This document shows positions 31,996 through 38,564 of a stretch of DNA of 64,000 nt, in pieces (the stretch's first letter is position 1; each line of letters starts with the position of its first letter). The position numbers were made by a program, and so were the translations under genes. The notes below the pieces were generated by a model, which had not been told where the DNA came from, searched no databases, and was given only the letters and a program-made list of their open reading frames with translations. The stretch comes from Macrostomum lignano. Taxonomy: Eukaryota. The stretch covers positions 1 to 64,000 of the forward strand of contig NIVC01000227.1 in the NCBI GenBank assembly GCA_002269645.1, read 5' to 3'.

Positions 31996-32809
31996 ATAAT
32001 CAAGATTTAATTTTTAGGTTGAGTCCGCTAAGTCGCACTGTTTCTAGGTAAGCTCTGCTCTCTGCTCTGATGTCGCAGTGGATCGCAAGCTCTTATGAGC
32101 AGTCTCTCTCTCTCTCTCTCTATAACTATAGCTGTGCGCCAATGTGTGCGCTCTCACGGTTGCTTAGCAACCAAGCAAACTACACAATAGCGTTCGCGCG
32201 CCCCCAGCTTATGCCAGCTGAGTATTCTTTTTGTGGGCGTTGAACTGAAAAGGGTGCGGGCTGGCAGAGAACGGGAGGGAGAGAGACAGAGAATGAGATT
32301 GGAGAGGCGGCTGCGCGGGACCAGGGAGTTCGAGGGGGACAGCCATCTGGGGAGGAAACTCCCAGAGAAATAAGCCACGAGATTACAGCCCTATGGGGCC
32401 GCTCTGCCTCTTTAAAGCCTTTTTATTGAAAACTAACTAATTACAAGACTTTGAATGAAGATTTTTAAGACTAAACTTTTAGGAATTGATTAGTTTCCTC
32501 AATCCAGAATTTTCTGTTCTAGCAATCCATGGTGAGTGACGTCGCTAGCGCAGAAGGTCGCTGCTCTACCCTTGGGCTAAAAATAACTGTGAGGTTGAGT
32601 CTACGGCTGCAGACTGTGCTGCAAACCCGCAAAGTCTGAGAAAAAGCTCTATTGGAAGAGTCTGGCAGGAAAAAGGAAAAAGTAAAGAAGAGTGGCTTCA
32701 CTGGAAGACACTTCAAAGCCCGTCTCTAATTACCTTTGGCTAAATTTGGCTGGCAACATGGCCTACCATGGATACAGCCAACAATATGAAAAATTAAATT
32801 AATTATAGA

Positions 32810-33730
32810 GAACCAAGATAGAATTGCATTGACAATCAAGATAGAATCAGATAGTGAGTCAAGATAGAATTGGATAGTGAGTCAAGATAGAATTGGATAG
32901 AGAGTCAAGATAGGATTGGATAGAGAATCAAGATAGACTTGGATAGAGAATCAAGATAGAACTGGAAAGAGAATCAAGATAGATTTGGATAGACAATCAA
33001 GATAGATTTGGATAGAGAGTCAAGATAGGATTGGATAGAGAATCAAGATAGAATCGGATAGAGAGTCAAGATAGATTTGGATAGAGAGTCAAGATAGGAT
33101 TGGATAGAGAATCAAGATAGACTTGGATAGAGAATCAAGATAGAATTGGATAGAGAATCAAGATAGATTTGGATAGACAATCAAGATAGATTTGGATAGA
33201 GAGTCAAGATAGGATTGGATAGAGAATCAAGATAGAATCGGATAGAGAGTCAAGATAGGATTGGATAGAGAATCAAGATAGATTTGGATAGACAATCAAG
33301 ATAGATTTGGATAGAGAGTCAAGATAGGATTGGATAGAGAATCAAGATAGAATCGGATAGAGAGTCAAGATAGATTTGGATAGAGAGTCAAGATAGGATT
33401 GGATAGAGAATCAAGATAGAATCGGATAGAGAGTCAAGATAGATTTGGATAGAGAGTCAAGATAGGATTGGATAGAGAATCAAGATAGAATTGGATAGAG
33501 AATCAAGAAAGAGATAGTGAGAAATTGGATAGATAGAAAATCAAGATAGAATTGAATAGACAATCAAGATAGATTTGGATAGAGAGTCAAGATAGGATTG
33601 GATAGAGAGTCAAGATAGGATTGGATAGAGAATCAAGATAGAATTGGATAGAGAATCAAGATAGAATTGGATAGAGAATCAAGATAGAATTGGATAGAAA
33701 GTCAAGATAGAATTGGATAGAGAACAAAGA
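32810..33730. repeat. 23-bp purine-rich minisatellite
   Basis: Unit ATCAAGATAGAATTGGATAGAGA and variants. Confidence 0.93.
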
Positions 33731-33917
33731 TAGAGACGAATGCAGACTAAGGTGACTCAAATCAGTTCCAAAAAAAATCCGAATGTTGGGTTTCCAATCG
33801 GCAGCAAACCAATCCAGTTCATGAAGTTCGAATTTTTCACTTTCTATTTTCAAATTTACTTTCTCAACCAGGGCGGCATCTGCCATCTGTCCACCATCGT
33901 CTCTCAATCTAAAAGTC

Positions 33918-36127
33918 TCAGAACACCATGTCATGCGGCCGCTGGCCGCTCTTCAGCGAGAACAGACTGCTCAGGTAGCCCAGCATGAGCTTCTTGTCCG
34001 GTCGGCCCAGCTTCACCAAGGCCGACATCACCTGGCTGTCGACCGATTTCTGGTCCTCGCGACGCTCCTGGGCGAGCTGGTAGGCGGCCTCCGGGCGGGT
34101 GAACGGGTCCTGGGCTGCTGGACTGGCCTTCTGCTTGGACTGCTTCTTGGTCCTGTCAGCGGGTTTGAGAATGGGCTAGCTTTAAATGGTAGTTGAGGGC
34201 TGAGGATCGACATCGTGCCGCAAAACCAGTGCTGACGCCAATTCTGCCCATTCCACTGACTCTTGAGTAGGGATTGCAATCCCGGGATCCCGGACACTTT
34301 TTGGCCTAACGGAATCCCGGGATTAGGGGCTCGGGATCCCGGGATAGGAAACTTTTTTGATAAAGTGGGTGATATCCAGGAAATGTCAAAATGTTCGTAT
34401 TTTAAATACATTACACAAGTAACATTCGCGCGTTGTGATTATGAGTCATGATCGTGACGTGACTCTCGATTCTCGAATCGTGATACAATACAAATTATTC
34501 AATACAGACAATACATGCGAGTCTCAAACTTGTGTTGTGTTTGTGTATTGGACTGCCTGTGTTACTTGTGTAACTTGTGAGGTTGTGTAACTTGTGTTAT
34601 GTACATAAAAGCATTGAAAAATGACTGGGAGATAATTTTGATTGCATGCATTACGAGCTCGAAGTTACAAGTGTAGAAAATAACAAATCAAGAAAAAACC
34701 ATTGTATATTAGATAATAGATACTCGGTAATGCTGTCAAGTCGAGAAATATGAAATGTATTACACACTATTACTGCTTTAAAGGCGGGTTTTCTGGCTTT
34801 CTATCGGCAAAAATATTTAAAATGTCAATCCCGGGATTGGGTCCGGGATCCCGGGATTGGGTCATTGCTTCGTCCGGGATCCCGGGATCGTAGAACAGCC
34901 GGGATTTGCCATCCCTACTCCTGAGCACCCAGACACCGCTCACTCAGGGTGCACAGAGGTCCTGACTGTCTAATCATCAGGCATGTACACTCTCTGTGCC
35001 TTAGGGGGTTGGCCCTCAGGGCTGTGAATCGCGCGACAACCGCCACGAACCAACCTTCTAAAATAGGCATCGTTGAGCCGCTCCGGCAGCCGCAGGTCCC
35101 CCAGCTCCAGCCGAGTCCTGGTGGCGATCACGAAGCTCTGGCAGACGCGTCTCAGCGGGCAGCCATTGACCTTGAATGGCCCCGTGACCAGCAGCAGTCC
35201 GCTGGCCAGCTGTTTCAGGAACACCACCCGCTTGCCGCGGTGCCGGCCGGCCAGCAGGATCAGCACGCTGCCCGGCTGGATGGAGGCTCTGAGACGGCGC
35301 CGCTGCCGCGCGAAGGTCTTGACTGGACGGAGACGGCGCGGCTTCGAGGTAGGCTCGGTGGGCAGACTACGGGGCTGGCGGCGGCTGGCCACCTGAATGG
35401 GGATTGGGGAATGCCTAGATTTCTCTCCGTTATTGAAGGGGATTTTTGTCTTCTGGGGGGAGGGGATTTCACACATTGCTTAAGACTGGAGTTTTTAACT
35501 TTGTCTAAAGAGGGGAATTTCTCACTTTGTCTAGCAAGGGGCAAGGGGAATTTCTCACTTTGTCTAGAGAGGGGAATTTCTCACTTTGTCTAGAGAGGGG
35601 AATTTCTCACTTTGTCTAGAGAGGGGAATTTCTAATTTGTCTAGCAAGGGGCAAGGGGAATTACTCAATTTGTCTAGCAAGGGGCAAGGGGAATTTCTTA
35701 CTTTGTCTAGAGAGGGGAATTTCTCACTTTTTCTAGCAAGGGAAATTACTCACTTTGTCTAGAGTGTGGGCAATTTCTAGATTAGTCTATGGTAGAAAAT
35801 TTCTTCTCGCCTCCGGCCTACCTGCCGAGTCCCTCCATTCTTATCGCCGCCGATGGGCTTCTCAACCGTGGCCGGTCGCTGCTGAGCGGCGGTGCTGGGC
35901 GCTCCCTTCAGCTTCCTGGCCAGCTTGTTGGCCGCCGACTTCTTGGCCAGCCTGTACAGGGCTTTGCGTTGAAACACCCGAGCCCGACTGTGGAGCATCA
36001 CCCCGCTGTAGCTCAGCTGCTCATTGCGGATACGGCTGCGGCGACTGGGGGCCTGCGACGGCGGCGGCTGAGGTGCCTGACCGGCTGCAGCAGCTTTGGA
36101 GGCGGCCACGGGGGCAACTGCAGCTGT
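33918..36127 (-). CDS. RPL6: 60S ribosomal protein eL6-like coding exons (no ATG of their own; see fusion finding)
   Basis: Exons about 36127-35822, 35392-35055 and 34152-33918. Motifs RNEQL..GV..SR....[75 protein letters not shown] and [19 protein letters not shown]. The 5' boundary of the first exon is uncertain. Confidence 0.92.
34268..34917. mobile_element. Non-autonomous hAT-type DNA transposon (650 bp) in the last eL6 intron
   Basis: TIRs TAGGGATTGCAATCCCGG / CCGGGATTTGCCATCCCTA, subterminal CCCGGGATCCCGG repeats, and an 8-bp TSD CTCTTGAG (34260-34267) / CTCCTGAG (34918-34925) matching at 7 of 8 positions. Confidence 0.85.
35505..35780. repeat. About 26-bp minisatellite in an eL6 intron
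   Basis: Unit GGGGAATTTCTCACTTTGTCTAGAGA. Confidence 0.88.
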
Positions 36128-36179
36128 CTTTTCAATTGCAGGAAAATGTTAATTAGTGTTTCTTTGTCATGTGTATCAG

Positions 36180-36770
36180 CCCCTTCTCTACCTGTCCCAC
36201 CCTTCATCTACCTGTATCACCCCTTTATCTAACTGTCTCACCCTTTATCTACCTGTCCCATCCTTCATCTACCTGTCTCACCCTTTCATCTACCTGTCTC
36301 ACCCCTTCATCTACTTGTCTCACCCCTTCATCTATCTGTCTCACCCCTTCATCTACCTGTCTCACCCCTTCATCTACCTGTCTCACCCCTTCATCTACCT
36401 GTCTCACCCTTTCATCTACCTGTCTCACTCCTTCATCTCCCTGTCTCACCCTTTCATCTACCTGTCTCACCCTTTCATCTACCTGTCTCACCCTTTCATC
36501 TACCTGTCTCACCCCTTCATCTATCTGTCTCACCCCTTCATCTCCCTGTCTCACCCCTTCATCTACCGGTCTCATCCCTTCATCTATCTGTCTCACCCCT
36601 TCATATACCTGTCTCACCCATTCATATACCTGTCTCACCCATTCATATACCTGTCTCACCCATTCAACTACATGTCTCACCCCTTCATCTCTCTGTCGAA
36701 TCCCTTTATCTCCCTGTCTCACCCCTTCAACTAAATGCCTCACCCCATCCTACCTGTCTAATCTGTTCAT
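36180..36770. repeat. 21-bp CT-rich minisatellite (TGTCTCACC core) between the EF-hand and eL6 exons
   Basis: Unit ACCTGTCTCACCCCTTCATCT. Confidence 0.92.
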
Positions 36771-36838
36771 GTCGCAACTCTCAACCCACCACTAAATTGT
36801 CTCATAAGTGGTTATGTAAAAAAAATTGTTAATTTTAC

Positions 36839-38134
36839 CTGCACGACCTCCTCTTGCACAGGCGGCTTCACAGTCTCCACAGTGACCCGCGTCTCTTCCT
36901 GCTCCTTACGTCTCTTCGCAACTTTCACCGCACGTGCCGTCTTGCCAGACTGAAGCAAAATGCAAAAAACACATTTCTGCATAATGCTACTCATAGTAGG
37001 TGAAATCAAGTTTTTTCTTAACCTTTTTGCCTTTGCTCTGCTGCGACTTGTGCTTGGCAATGACGTCCTTCTTAGGCGGGAGGCCCAGCGCGTTGCAGTA
37101 TTCGTCGTAGGTGATGCGGCCGTTCTGATCAGCGTCGAACAGCATCAGCCACTTCTGCACGAACGTCTCTTGGTAGTTCATCTTGCGGCAGTAGCTGCGG
37201 TAGGGGGGTGTTAGACATGATGGTGTTACCTGTTAGACATGGTGGTGTCACCTGTTAGACATGGTGGTGTCACCTGTTAGACATGATGATATTATCCTGT
37301 TAGACATGATGGTGTCATCTGTTAGACTTGATAGCAACTTTTAGACACGATAGCACTTGTTAGACATGATAGCACCCGTTAGACTTGATAGAACTTGTTA
37401 GACACGATAGCACCTGTTAGACACGATAGCACCTGTTAGACAGGATAGCACCTGTTAGACACGATAGCACCTGTTAGACACGGTAGCACCTGTTAGACAC
37501 GATAGCACCTGTTAGACACGATAGCACCTGTTAGACAGGATAGCACCTGTTAGACACGATAGCACCTGTTAGACACGGTAGCACCTGTTAGACACGATAG
37601 CACCTGTTAGACACGGTAGCACCTGTTAGACACGATAGCACCTGTTAGACACGATAGCAACTGTTAGACACGATAGCACCTGTTAGACACGATAGCACCT
37701 GTTAGACACGATAGCACCTGTTAGACACGATAGCACCTGTTAGACACGGTAGCAACTGTTAGACACGATAGCACCTGTTAGACACGATAGCACCTGTTAG
37801 ACACGATAGTACCTGTTAGACATGATAGCAACTGTTAGACACGATAGCACCTGTTAGACACGATAGCACCTGTTAGACATTGGCACGCCCTGCAACTTGA
37901 AGCTACTTGGTTCAAAGGCTACCCAGAAGAACCCAGCCTCACCTTTGCAGCTCATCAACTGTGATTTCGCCAGAGTGGTCCGTATCGATCGACAGGAAGG
38001 CCTTGTGGAAATCCATGCCCTCATCCTAGATTGAAAAATGTGAATTGACAAAATCGTCATTCTTTCGAAATTTAATCTTCGTAGATTAATTAGAATCAAT
38101 CAATTAGATTAGTTGTTACCTGAGCTGACGCCAT
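36839..38134 (-). CDS. EF-hand pair protein resembling the N-terminal domain of flatworm tegumental allergen-like (TAL) proteins; 4 exons, no stop codon
   Basis: Exons 38134-38120 (MASAQ), 38025-37943, 37194-37023 and 36949-36839, phases 0/2/0. Two canonical loops, DTDHSGEITVDE and DADQNGRITYDE. TAL-like context KAFLSID...YC...KWLMLFD...EYCNALG. The last exon ends at a CAG|GTAAAA donor. Confidence 0.88.
37210..37880. repeat. 19-bp minisatellite in an EF-hand gene intron
   Basis: Sense unit GTGCTATCGTGTCTAACAG. Confidence 0.94.
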
Positions 38135-38564
38135 TTTAATTTGTCACTAAGAAGCACAATCTGCAACTTTGTTGCACAAAGCTATACCTTCTTTTAGTCT
38201 TGACGCAAAAAGCAGAATAAGTTGCTTTCCCCAAGTGGCTTCAGCTTCAAATATCCCCCCTCCGGGTCATTCCCACCCTTGGCACTGACCGAACGCTCTT
38301 CGTGCGCAAGGGTGTACACTGATTCCACTTTTCCTAACTACGTTAGGAATCTGGACTGGGAAGCAAGTTGTACAATATGCCAGTTTTAGAAGTCCTTGTA
38401 GCCTAGCTAGGGATGCTGAATCTAAAAAAGCAATAAGATCGCACTGGACGGGCAAGGGTTCTTTGTTTTCTTCCTTCAACGGAGCATCCAAGGAGGCCAT
38501 GGACACAAATCTGGTAGACCTCACTTTCTACCGAAGCTATCACTTCTGTTTAGCCGAATATTGG

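Follow-up and report, generated by a model that had tools for sequence, protein, structure and literature searches.

To our knowledge, core ribosomal proteins almost never gain folded signalling domains, the textbook exceptions being the ubiquitin fusions. In UBA52 (ubiquitin-eL40), RPS27A (ubiquitin-eS31) and FAU (FUBI-eS30), a ubiquitin-fold domain is cleaved from the ribosomal protein at a GG motif. The large-subunit protein eL6, which occupies a solvent-exposed position in the 60S subunit beside expansion segments of the ribosomal RNA (rRNA), is known in its canonical form for a variable, basic N-terminal extension, as in a 408-residue version with a long Lys/Pro/Glu-rich N-terminus (our entry P0090). 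Two flatworm systems are also relevant. The TAL/CaBP proteins (CsTAL3, FhCaBP4 and the Sm22.6 family) carry an EF-hand module followed, at the C-terminus, by a domain resembling dynein light chain, and in flatworm spliced-leader (SL) operons a downstream open reading frame (ORF) without an ATG can receive its AUG from the leader. Here we consider the gene Mlig004334.g2 of the flatworm Macrostomum lignano, which lies in a stretch of 64,000 nucleotides (assembly GCA_002269645.1, contig NIVC01000227.1, positions 1 to 64,000 of the forward strand; hereafter the window). Most probably this is a single seven-exon gene encoding an EF-hand pair, a linker and eL6 in one chain, the flatworm ortholog of eL6, which would carry its EF-hand pair on the ribosome.

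The seven exons lie on the minus strand between 38134 and 33918, and the joined ORF of 1260 nt encodes 419 amino acids (MASAQ...HDMVF*). This structure, proposed in an earlier sequence-only reading of the window, is reproduced exactly in the public record: the product is residue-for-residue identical to GenBank PAA87491.1 (BOX15_Mlig004334g2) and to UniProt A0A267GN94, 'Large ribosomal subunit protein eL6'. The EF-hand pair occupies residues ~9-75 and is followed by a linker of ~85 residues (~76-160), basic at its start, and then by eL6. Like the ubiquitin-type fusions, the gene places a small globular domain in frame before a core ribosomal protein, in an arrangement that is conserved over a large clade. 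Unlike them, it has an EF-hand pair, a long linker and no recognisable cleavage motif, and is limited to one phylum. Membership of the ubiquitin class was rejected on these grounds, the domain being an EF-hand pair with no GG at its boundary, and the likeness is architectural only. All the invariant core residues of canonical metazoan eL6 are present in the M. lignano protein, whereas the extension differs from that of canonical eL6 in containing a predicted folded EF-hand pair.

The join between the two halves is made across intron 4 (36128..36838; 711 nt, GT...AAG). Exon 4 (36839..36949), a linker exon of 111 nt or 37 codons in phase 0-0 (SGKTARAVKVAKRRKEQEETRVTVETVKPPVQEEVVQ), has no stop codon and ends in a phase-0 donor (GTGCAG|gtaaaa at 36839), while the AAG acceptor at 36128|36127 leads into the eL6 frame of exon 5. 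The eL6 frame requires an upstream start, because its nearest in-frame stop upstream is a TAA at 36151-36149 and there is no Met between that stop and the RNEQL motif, the R codon of which lies at 36028. A 21-bp array of 28.2 copies (36172-36759) takes up most of the interval between the EF-hand and eL6 exons, and no poly(A) signal of the AATAAA/ATTAAA type is present in the 711 nt. The open exon 4, the missing eL6 start codon and the array had all been pointed out in the sequence-only reading, and all three stand.

Use of the AAG acceptor to unite the frames, also suggested at that stage, is borne out by the transcript-based model and by fused homologous mRNAs in many taxa. The M. lignano gene models were built from StringTie/TACO assemblies of RNA-seq reads together with a mapped de novo transcriptome, rather than ab initio; TransDecoder then called ORFs on transcripts that the TBONE pipeline had cut wherever SL or poly(A) peaks had been mapped by experiment (PMC5730564). 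The resulting model, PAA87491.1, uses the AAG acceptor and is uncut between the EF-hand and eL6 parts. M. lignano carries the fusion gene as two near-identical duplicated copies, and the second, g1 (PAA72884.1), differs from g2 at seven residues. The g1 locus is collinear with the window across exons and introns and keeps 12/12 splice sites, including the donor of intron 4 and the AAG acceptor (...attgaaaag|). Between the two coding sequences there are 12 synonymous and 7 non-synonymous changes. Of three substitutions just past the exon 5 acceptor, two are silent when read in the fusion frame, and one of this pair, GTG>GTA, converts TGG to TAG in the alternative frame beginning LQLPPW. Upstream of g1 lies a gene for a PX-domain protein kinase and downstream of it one for a scramblase; these two neighbours and the eL6 gene share one strand.

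Other samples, represented by Logan assemblies of SRA/ENA runs and by JGI samples (about 10 independent sequencing runs), yielded eight distinct mRNA-like contigs of 1.1-1.4 kb that are intronless and have both 5' and 3' untranslated regions (UTRs). Each contains an in-frame stop upstream of MDFH and a single uninterrupted ORF running to the eL6 terminus (...H.M.F*), and several were recovered independently in 2-4 runs. By their sequence these contigs are mature mRNAs and not polycistronic precursors; their placement as flatworm comes from the eL6-core tree only, and they are presumably free-living. They are the source contigs of eight further protein clusters, of 346-369 amino acids and with EF-hand and L6e domains, that a search of 5.8 billion proteins turned up. 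Collectively, the published transcript-based model and the homology on which the junction rests make it very likely that the join of EF-hand and eL6 is real.

In the EF-hand half, Pfam EF-hand_7 matches residues 11-68 with 46.7 bits (cut-off 30), and both loops have 6/6 canonical ligand positions when the 12-residue loop is scored for D at position 1, D/N/S at 3, D/N/S/T/G at 5, G at 6, I/L/V at 8 and E at 12. Exon 2 (37943..38025), which begins DEGMDFHKAF, encodes EF-hand 1 with its Ca2+ loop DTDHSGEITVDE at 37986-37951. EF-hand 2, whose loop DADQNGRITYDE lies at 37136-37101, is encoded by exon 3 (37023..37194) together with the LGLPP motif and the onset of the basic linker; this exon ends in phase 0. 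AlphaFold predicts a confident pair of helix-loop-helix units (pLDDT 82-87) and a linker that is disordered over residues 111-172. PDB 5x2e (CsTAL3, E 6e-12) and 9voa (FhCaBP4, E 4e-11) align with the entire module, and its nearest stand-alone relatives are EF-hand plus Dynein_light proteins, several of them from M. lignano, including PAA61473.1. The identification of the module as TAL-type in the sequence-only reading is therefore upheld by these alignments and relatives. With the TAL/CaBP proteins it has in common the KW..LFD and LGL.P motifs and an inter-EF spacing shorter than that of calmodulin. However, where a TAL protein has a dynein-light-chain-like domain as its C-terminal partner, the fusion has eL6. 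Three of the relatives (P0210, P0300 and P0240) match Dynein_light (PF01221), whereas Pfam finds no such match in the 419-residue protein, and because it is without this domain the fusion protein is not a TAL and shares the module only.

Position 10 of the EF2 loop separates the two groups, being Tyr or Phe in 13/13 fusion modules and Ile, Leu or Val in 8/8 TAL-type modules, a character that would fit a single origin of the fusion. An intron interrupts the EF module at different positions in the fusion (FVE|KWL) and in the M. lignano TAL paralog (ELQ|SYC); this comparison was run as a test for exon shuffling, on which a position that is not shared is uninformative. The free-living M. lignano encodes several proteins of the EF-hand plus Dynein_light (TAL/CaBP) architecture, including one at locus NIVC01002030.1. 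A 2025 paper describes the EF-hand plus Dynein_light fusion as 'found only in trematodes'.

The C-terminal half is a complete eL6. Pfam Ribosomal_L6e (PF01159) matches residues 304-419 over its full profile (1-111) with 100.2 bits against a cut-off of 21.4, and Ribosomal_L6e_N (PF03868) scores 18.9 bits, below its cut-off of 25. The N-terminal eL6 motifs (RN..L...SR..F..KA.Y and IGGDKNGG) align column-for-column with the eL6 of Lingula and zebrafish. Solved vertebrate eL6 chains can be aligned with residues ~160-419 from end to end (E about 1e-60), and these PDB alignments start at the exon 5 motif. AlphaFold models this half with low confidence, as expected for a ribosomal protein in the absence of rRNA.

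The sequence-only reading had taken the fusion for a paralog of eL6, a view that is not sustained. Among the matches listed (two ranked lists, best 120), every M. lignano eL6 bears the EF part and none is canonical. Scores fall into two groups among these matches, with fusions at 431 bits or more and canonical eL6 at 332 bits or less. Also among them, canonical eL6 of annelids, molluscs, brachiopods, nemerteans, rotifers, arthropods and vertebrates shows no EF-hand extension. Because the M. lignano matches are all EF-bearing, the fusion is common to flukes and tapeworms, and the fusion cores fall in one clade, the fused gene looks like the flatworm eL6 ortholog rather than an additional paralog, and its product would be incorporated into the 60S subunit. 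On the same sequence comparisons, the EF-hand fusion is apparently the only flatworm eL6.

The distribution of the fusion was followed with an exhaustive HMMER scan of 1.84 billion representative proteins, using a profile of the EF module alone, together with cluster look-ups and Pfam. The scan brought up long proteins with the module at residues ~3-70 that are annotated as eL6 of parasitic flatworms. EF-hand_7 and Ribosomal_L6e occur together in six named species: Calicophoron daubneyi (973 amino acids), Opisthorchis felineus (1500), Schistosoma haematobium (1286, named '60S ribosomal protein L6, variant 2'), Mesocestoides corti (1137), Schistocephalus solidus (1372) and Sparganum proliferum (1562). 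In the five of these on which Pfam was run (all but Sparganum), EF-hand_7 is N-terminal and Ribosomal_L6e C-terminal (5/5). Also recovered were S. turkestanicum (1339 amino acids), S. curassoni (three models of 1098-1300 amino acids, of which the one inspected, of 1226, is without the EF-hand N-terminus), a partial O. viverrini protein named 'EF hand' and a 133-residue, EF-hand-only fragment from the monogenean Protopolystoma. In the parasites, 700-1300 low-complexity residues separate the EF module from the eL6 core. A neighbour-joining (NJ) tree of the eL6 core places all fusions in one clade, within which the Macrostomum group (bootstrap 100), Neodermata (98), Cestoda (100) and Trematoda (99) branch in the order of the flatworm phylogeny. 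Outside it lie the canonical eL6 proteins of annelids, molluscs, a brachiopod, a nemertean, a rotifer, a beetle and a fish. Judged from these sequences, the fusion is common to trematodes, cestodes and several presumably free-living flatworm transcripts, and the EF-hand-only fragment suggests that it probably occurs in a monogenean.

The strongest rival to a single fused gene, which the sequence-only reading overlooked, is an operon with the EF-hand gene and eL6 as its two cistrons. The M. lignano spliced leader, CGGTCTCTTACTGCGAAGACTCAATTTATTGCATG, is 35 nt long and ends in ATG; spliced at 36128|36127 it would give ATG|ACA GCT... and an eL6 of ~292 amino acids (MTAAVAPV...), the fused ORF being a minor product or a precursor. 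Trans-splicing affects approximately 30% of M. lignano genes, and 15% belong to operons, the spacers of which are inflated by repeats. The locus resembles flatworm SL operons with a leader-donated AUG in that its downstream ORF has no ATG of its own and a spacer filled with repeats, here the mostly satellite intron 4, precedes the 3' splice site. Whichever phase-0 acceptor is used, the leader AUG comes to lie in frame, and the locus is split in some cestode genome annotations. However, the upstream ORF of an SL operon would be expected to have its own stop and a poly(A) signal, and the downstream ORF an acceptor of the form [T/C]TNCAG, none of which is found here. Exon 4 runs without a stop into a good GTAAAA donor that is kept in the paralog, and by Conrad's rule trans-splicing predominates only where there is no upstream cis donor. 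Read-through of exon 4 would terminate at VKLTIFFT*, yet the intron offers no poly(A) signal. The AAG does not match the trans-acceptor motif, and the fitting CTGCAG (exon start 36117) is out of frame. The cutting of transcripts at SL and poly(A) peaks left this one whole, and the ORF is continuous in the eight independent homologous mRNAs and in the parasite proteins. Two cistrons thus seem quite unlikely. The alternative named in the sequence-only reading, a start at an ATG of the 21-bp array with phase-1 splicing to CAG|TT at 36118, is without support: in the public model, in the paralog and in every homolog the start is at the EF-hand. About as unlikely as two cistrons is the proposal that the locus is bifunctional, the 3' splice sites CAG|CTG (36123) and CAG|TTG (36117) yielding, beside the fusion, an EF-hand-only protein ending ...LQLPPW...SS*, either a small Ca2+-binding protein or a target of nonsense-mediated decay. 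These two consensus CAGs lie 4 and 10 nt past a weak AAG, and one WormBase-derived model (P0002) used the CAG at 36123. However, P0002 returns to the eL6 frame, as befits a frameshift-patched prediction on an older assembly rather than transcript evidence, and in g1 the rival frame meets a TAG after five codons and its tail has no homolog. At most this would be a minor by-product, the fusion still being needed to make eL6, and on the sequence minor use of the two CAGs is plausible.

Two unrelated neighbouring genes might also have been merged by gene prediction, since chimeric models are common in draft genomes, an example being an unrelated protein with thiolase domains joined to eL6 (P0108). 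This is extremely improbable, and is effectively refuted by the continuous homologous mRNAs, the parasite proteins and the absent eL6 start codon: the intronless contigs, with UTRs and upstream stops, come from about 10 independent runs, and the fusion is conserved across the phylum and in both M. lignano copies. A different possibility accepts one translated chain but holds that the EF-hand and linker are a pro-domain, which is cleaved off or acts only as an intramolecular chaperone in synthesis, import or assembly, so that the mature ribosome contains an ordinary eL6. The architecture, a small folded N-terminal domain and a flexible linker before a ribosomal protein, would match, an eL6 of 1000-1500 amino acids in the parasites seems awkward as a stoichiometric ribosomal protein, and the linker is poorly conserved and highly variable in length. 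Nevertheless, a pro-domain appears unlikely: the alignment shows no conserved cleavage motif at the boundary between module and linker, such as the C-terminal GG of ubiquitin, and the canonical Ca2+ ligands are kept in free-living species, which suggests selection on Ca2+ binding itself.

A single fused eL6 gene is therefore preferred, and what weighs against it is best set out together. Its junction depends on the published model and on homology; the AAG acceptor is weak and is followed by the frameshifting CAGs, so that some mis-spliced or alternative product from the intron 4 acceptors is likely. An SL ending in ATG and in frame at 36127 makes a stand-alone eL6 isoform, presumably minor, mechanistically possible. 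Some annotations of Mesocestoides and Schistocephalus split the locus into an EF-plus-linker gene and an eL6 gene. The proposal that the fusion is the only eL6 comes from lists of the best 120 matches rather than from a genome-wide search, and the clade of fusions in the eL6-core tree has a bootstrap of only 62%. The NJ tree of the EF module separates fusions from TALs with bootstraps of 10-15% at its deep nodes. Ca2+ sensing as a conserved role is opposed by the loops of flukes and tapeworms, which are without the position-12 Glu in 9/10 cases and mostly without further ligands. Finally, both the attachment of the EF-hand pair in the mature ribosome and its Ca2+ binding are things that we infer.

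If the fused protein behaves as its parts suggest, the eL6 core would take its normal place in the 60S subunit, on the solvent-exposed side beside the expansion segments of the rRNA, and the ribosome would display the EF-hand pair at its surface on the flexible linker. TAL modules of solved structure bind Ca2+ with a change of conformation, only one of the two sites binding or acting as the primary site. M. lignano and nearly all free-living sequences have fully canonical loops, and in these species the module would probably bind Ca2+ and change conformation in the same way, which could make it a Ca2+-dependent docking or regulatory handle for the ribosome or for free eL6. By analogy with the TAL modules such a handle is possible for the free-living species, though we advance it tentatively. 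Given the degenerate loops of the parasites and their linkers of ~700-1300 residues, what the phylum has conserved may be a role in protein docking, and not Ca2+ sensing as such.

The remaining features of the gene concern its start, its splice sites and its repeats. Exon 1 (38120..38134) holds the annotated start ATG GCG TCA GCT CAG (MASAQ), ends in a phase-0 donor and is identical in g1. Homologous transcripts start at the Met of MDFH or four codons before it, and M. lignano has this additional 15-nt first coding exon; the true initiator may be Met1, in this exon, or Met9 (38010-38008). Exon 5 (35822..36127) encodes the Ala/Pro-rich end of the linker and then the N-terminal region of eL6, with no start codon of its own. 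Exon 6 (35055..35392) encodes the eL6 core, the Ribosomal_L6e match starting at residue 304 (about 35170), and exon 7 (33918..34152) the eL6 C-terminus and the TGA stop (33920-33918). All donors are GT, and the acceptors are CAG apart from TAG at exon 2 and AAG at exon 5. The AAG leads into the eL6 frame and the CAGs 4 and 10 nt downstream into the short LQLPPW...SS* frame; more phase-0 CAG acceptors occur in the exon 5 region, with exon starts at 36076, 36067 and 36052. In the closest relatives an alignment gap stands in place of the exon 4 linker, and as exons 1, 3 and 4 all end in phase 0, skipping of exon 4 would preserve the frame too. UniProt A0A1I8IIW6 (413 amino acids) is without VASRRQ, corresponding to a CAG acceptor 18 nt into exon 6 (~35392-35375), where there may be an in-frame alternative 3' splice site.

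The gene is rich in private satellites: besides that of intron 4, arrays are found in intron 2 (19 bp, ~30 copies, 37209-37880) and intron 5 (26 bp, 35482-35789), and others flank the gene just upstream (46/23 bp, ~1.9 kb, 38563-40497) and just downstream (23 bp, 41 copies, 32805-33734). The arrays occur in g1 as well, in different copy numbers. Intron 6 contains an insertion of ~670 bp (34260-34925) resembling a miniature inverted-repeat transposable element, with terminal inverted repeats at 34260-34295 and 34841-34925 that are rich in CCCGGGATCCCGG. The insertion is younger than the duplication of g1 and g2, because the paralog locus is without the whole of 34200-35032.

No paper connecting an EF-hand with eL6 in flatworms came up in the literature searches, and the one match to all three search terms was coincidental. 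Neither were papers found on the sequencing runs behind the transcript contigs, on gene ID Mlig004334 or on Macrostomum with RPL6, and the gene is absent from the supplements of PMC5816591. The suggestion in the sequence-only reading that such a protein had not been described thus holds for the literature searched, in which no paper on the fusion was found, and fails for the databases, since the protein was already in GenBank and UniProt under the label eL6. The fusion is already public as automatic annotation only, sometimes split in two, and no paper seems to have discussed it.

The most far-reaching reading of the gene is that a stoichiometric EF module is tethered to eL6 throughout the phylum. 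In free-living species the ribosome itself would be a direct sensor of Ca2+, acting in docking, localisation or translational control, while in flukes and tapeworms a tether of more than 1000 residues would make by far the largest eL6 known and would present a parasite-specific, TAL-like epitope and drug target. Taken as a whole this reading is doubtful, but its parts indicate where the gene matters. In schistosomes, liver flukes and tapeworms the product is a protein of 1000-1500 amino acids, the N-terminus of which resembles the TAL antigens that bind immunoglobulin E and the C-terminus of which is essential for ribosome assembly, and this is relevant to parasite-specific targeting and to the interpretation of TAL serology. 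Annotation practice is corrected as well, several helminth annotations having split the gene or labelled its pieces 'EF hand, partial'. Transgenesis and RNA interference are available in M. lignano, which makes the fusion experimentally tractable. An EF-hand pair kept on eL6 across a phylum would be a natural component of a 'specialised ribosome', with a testable input, Ca2+.

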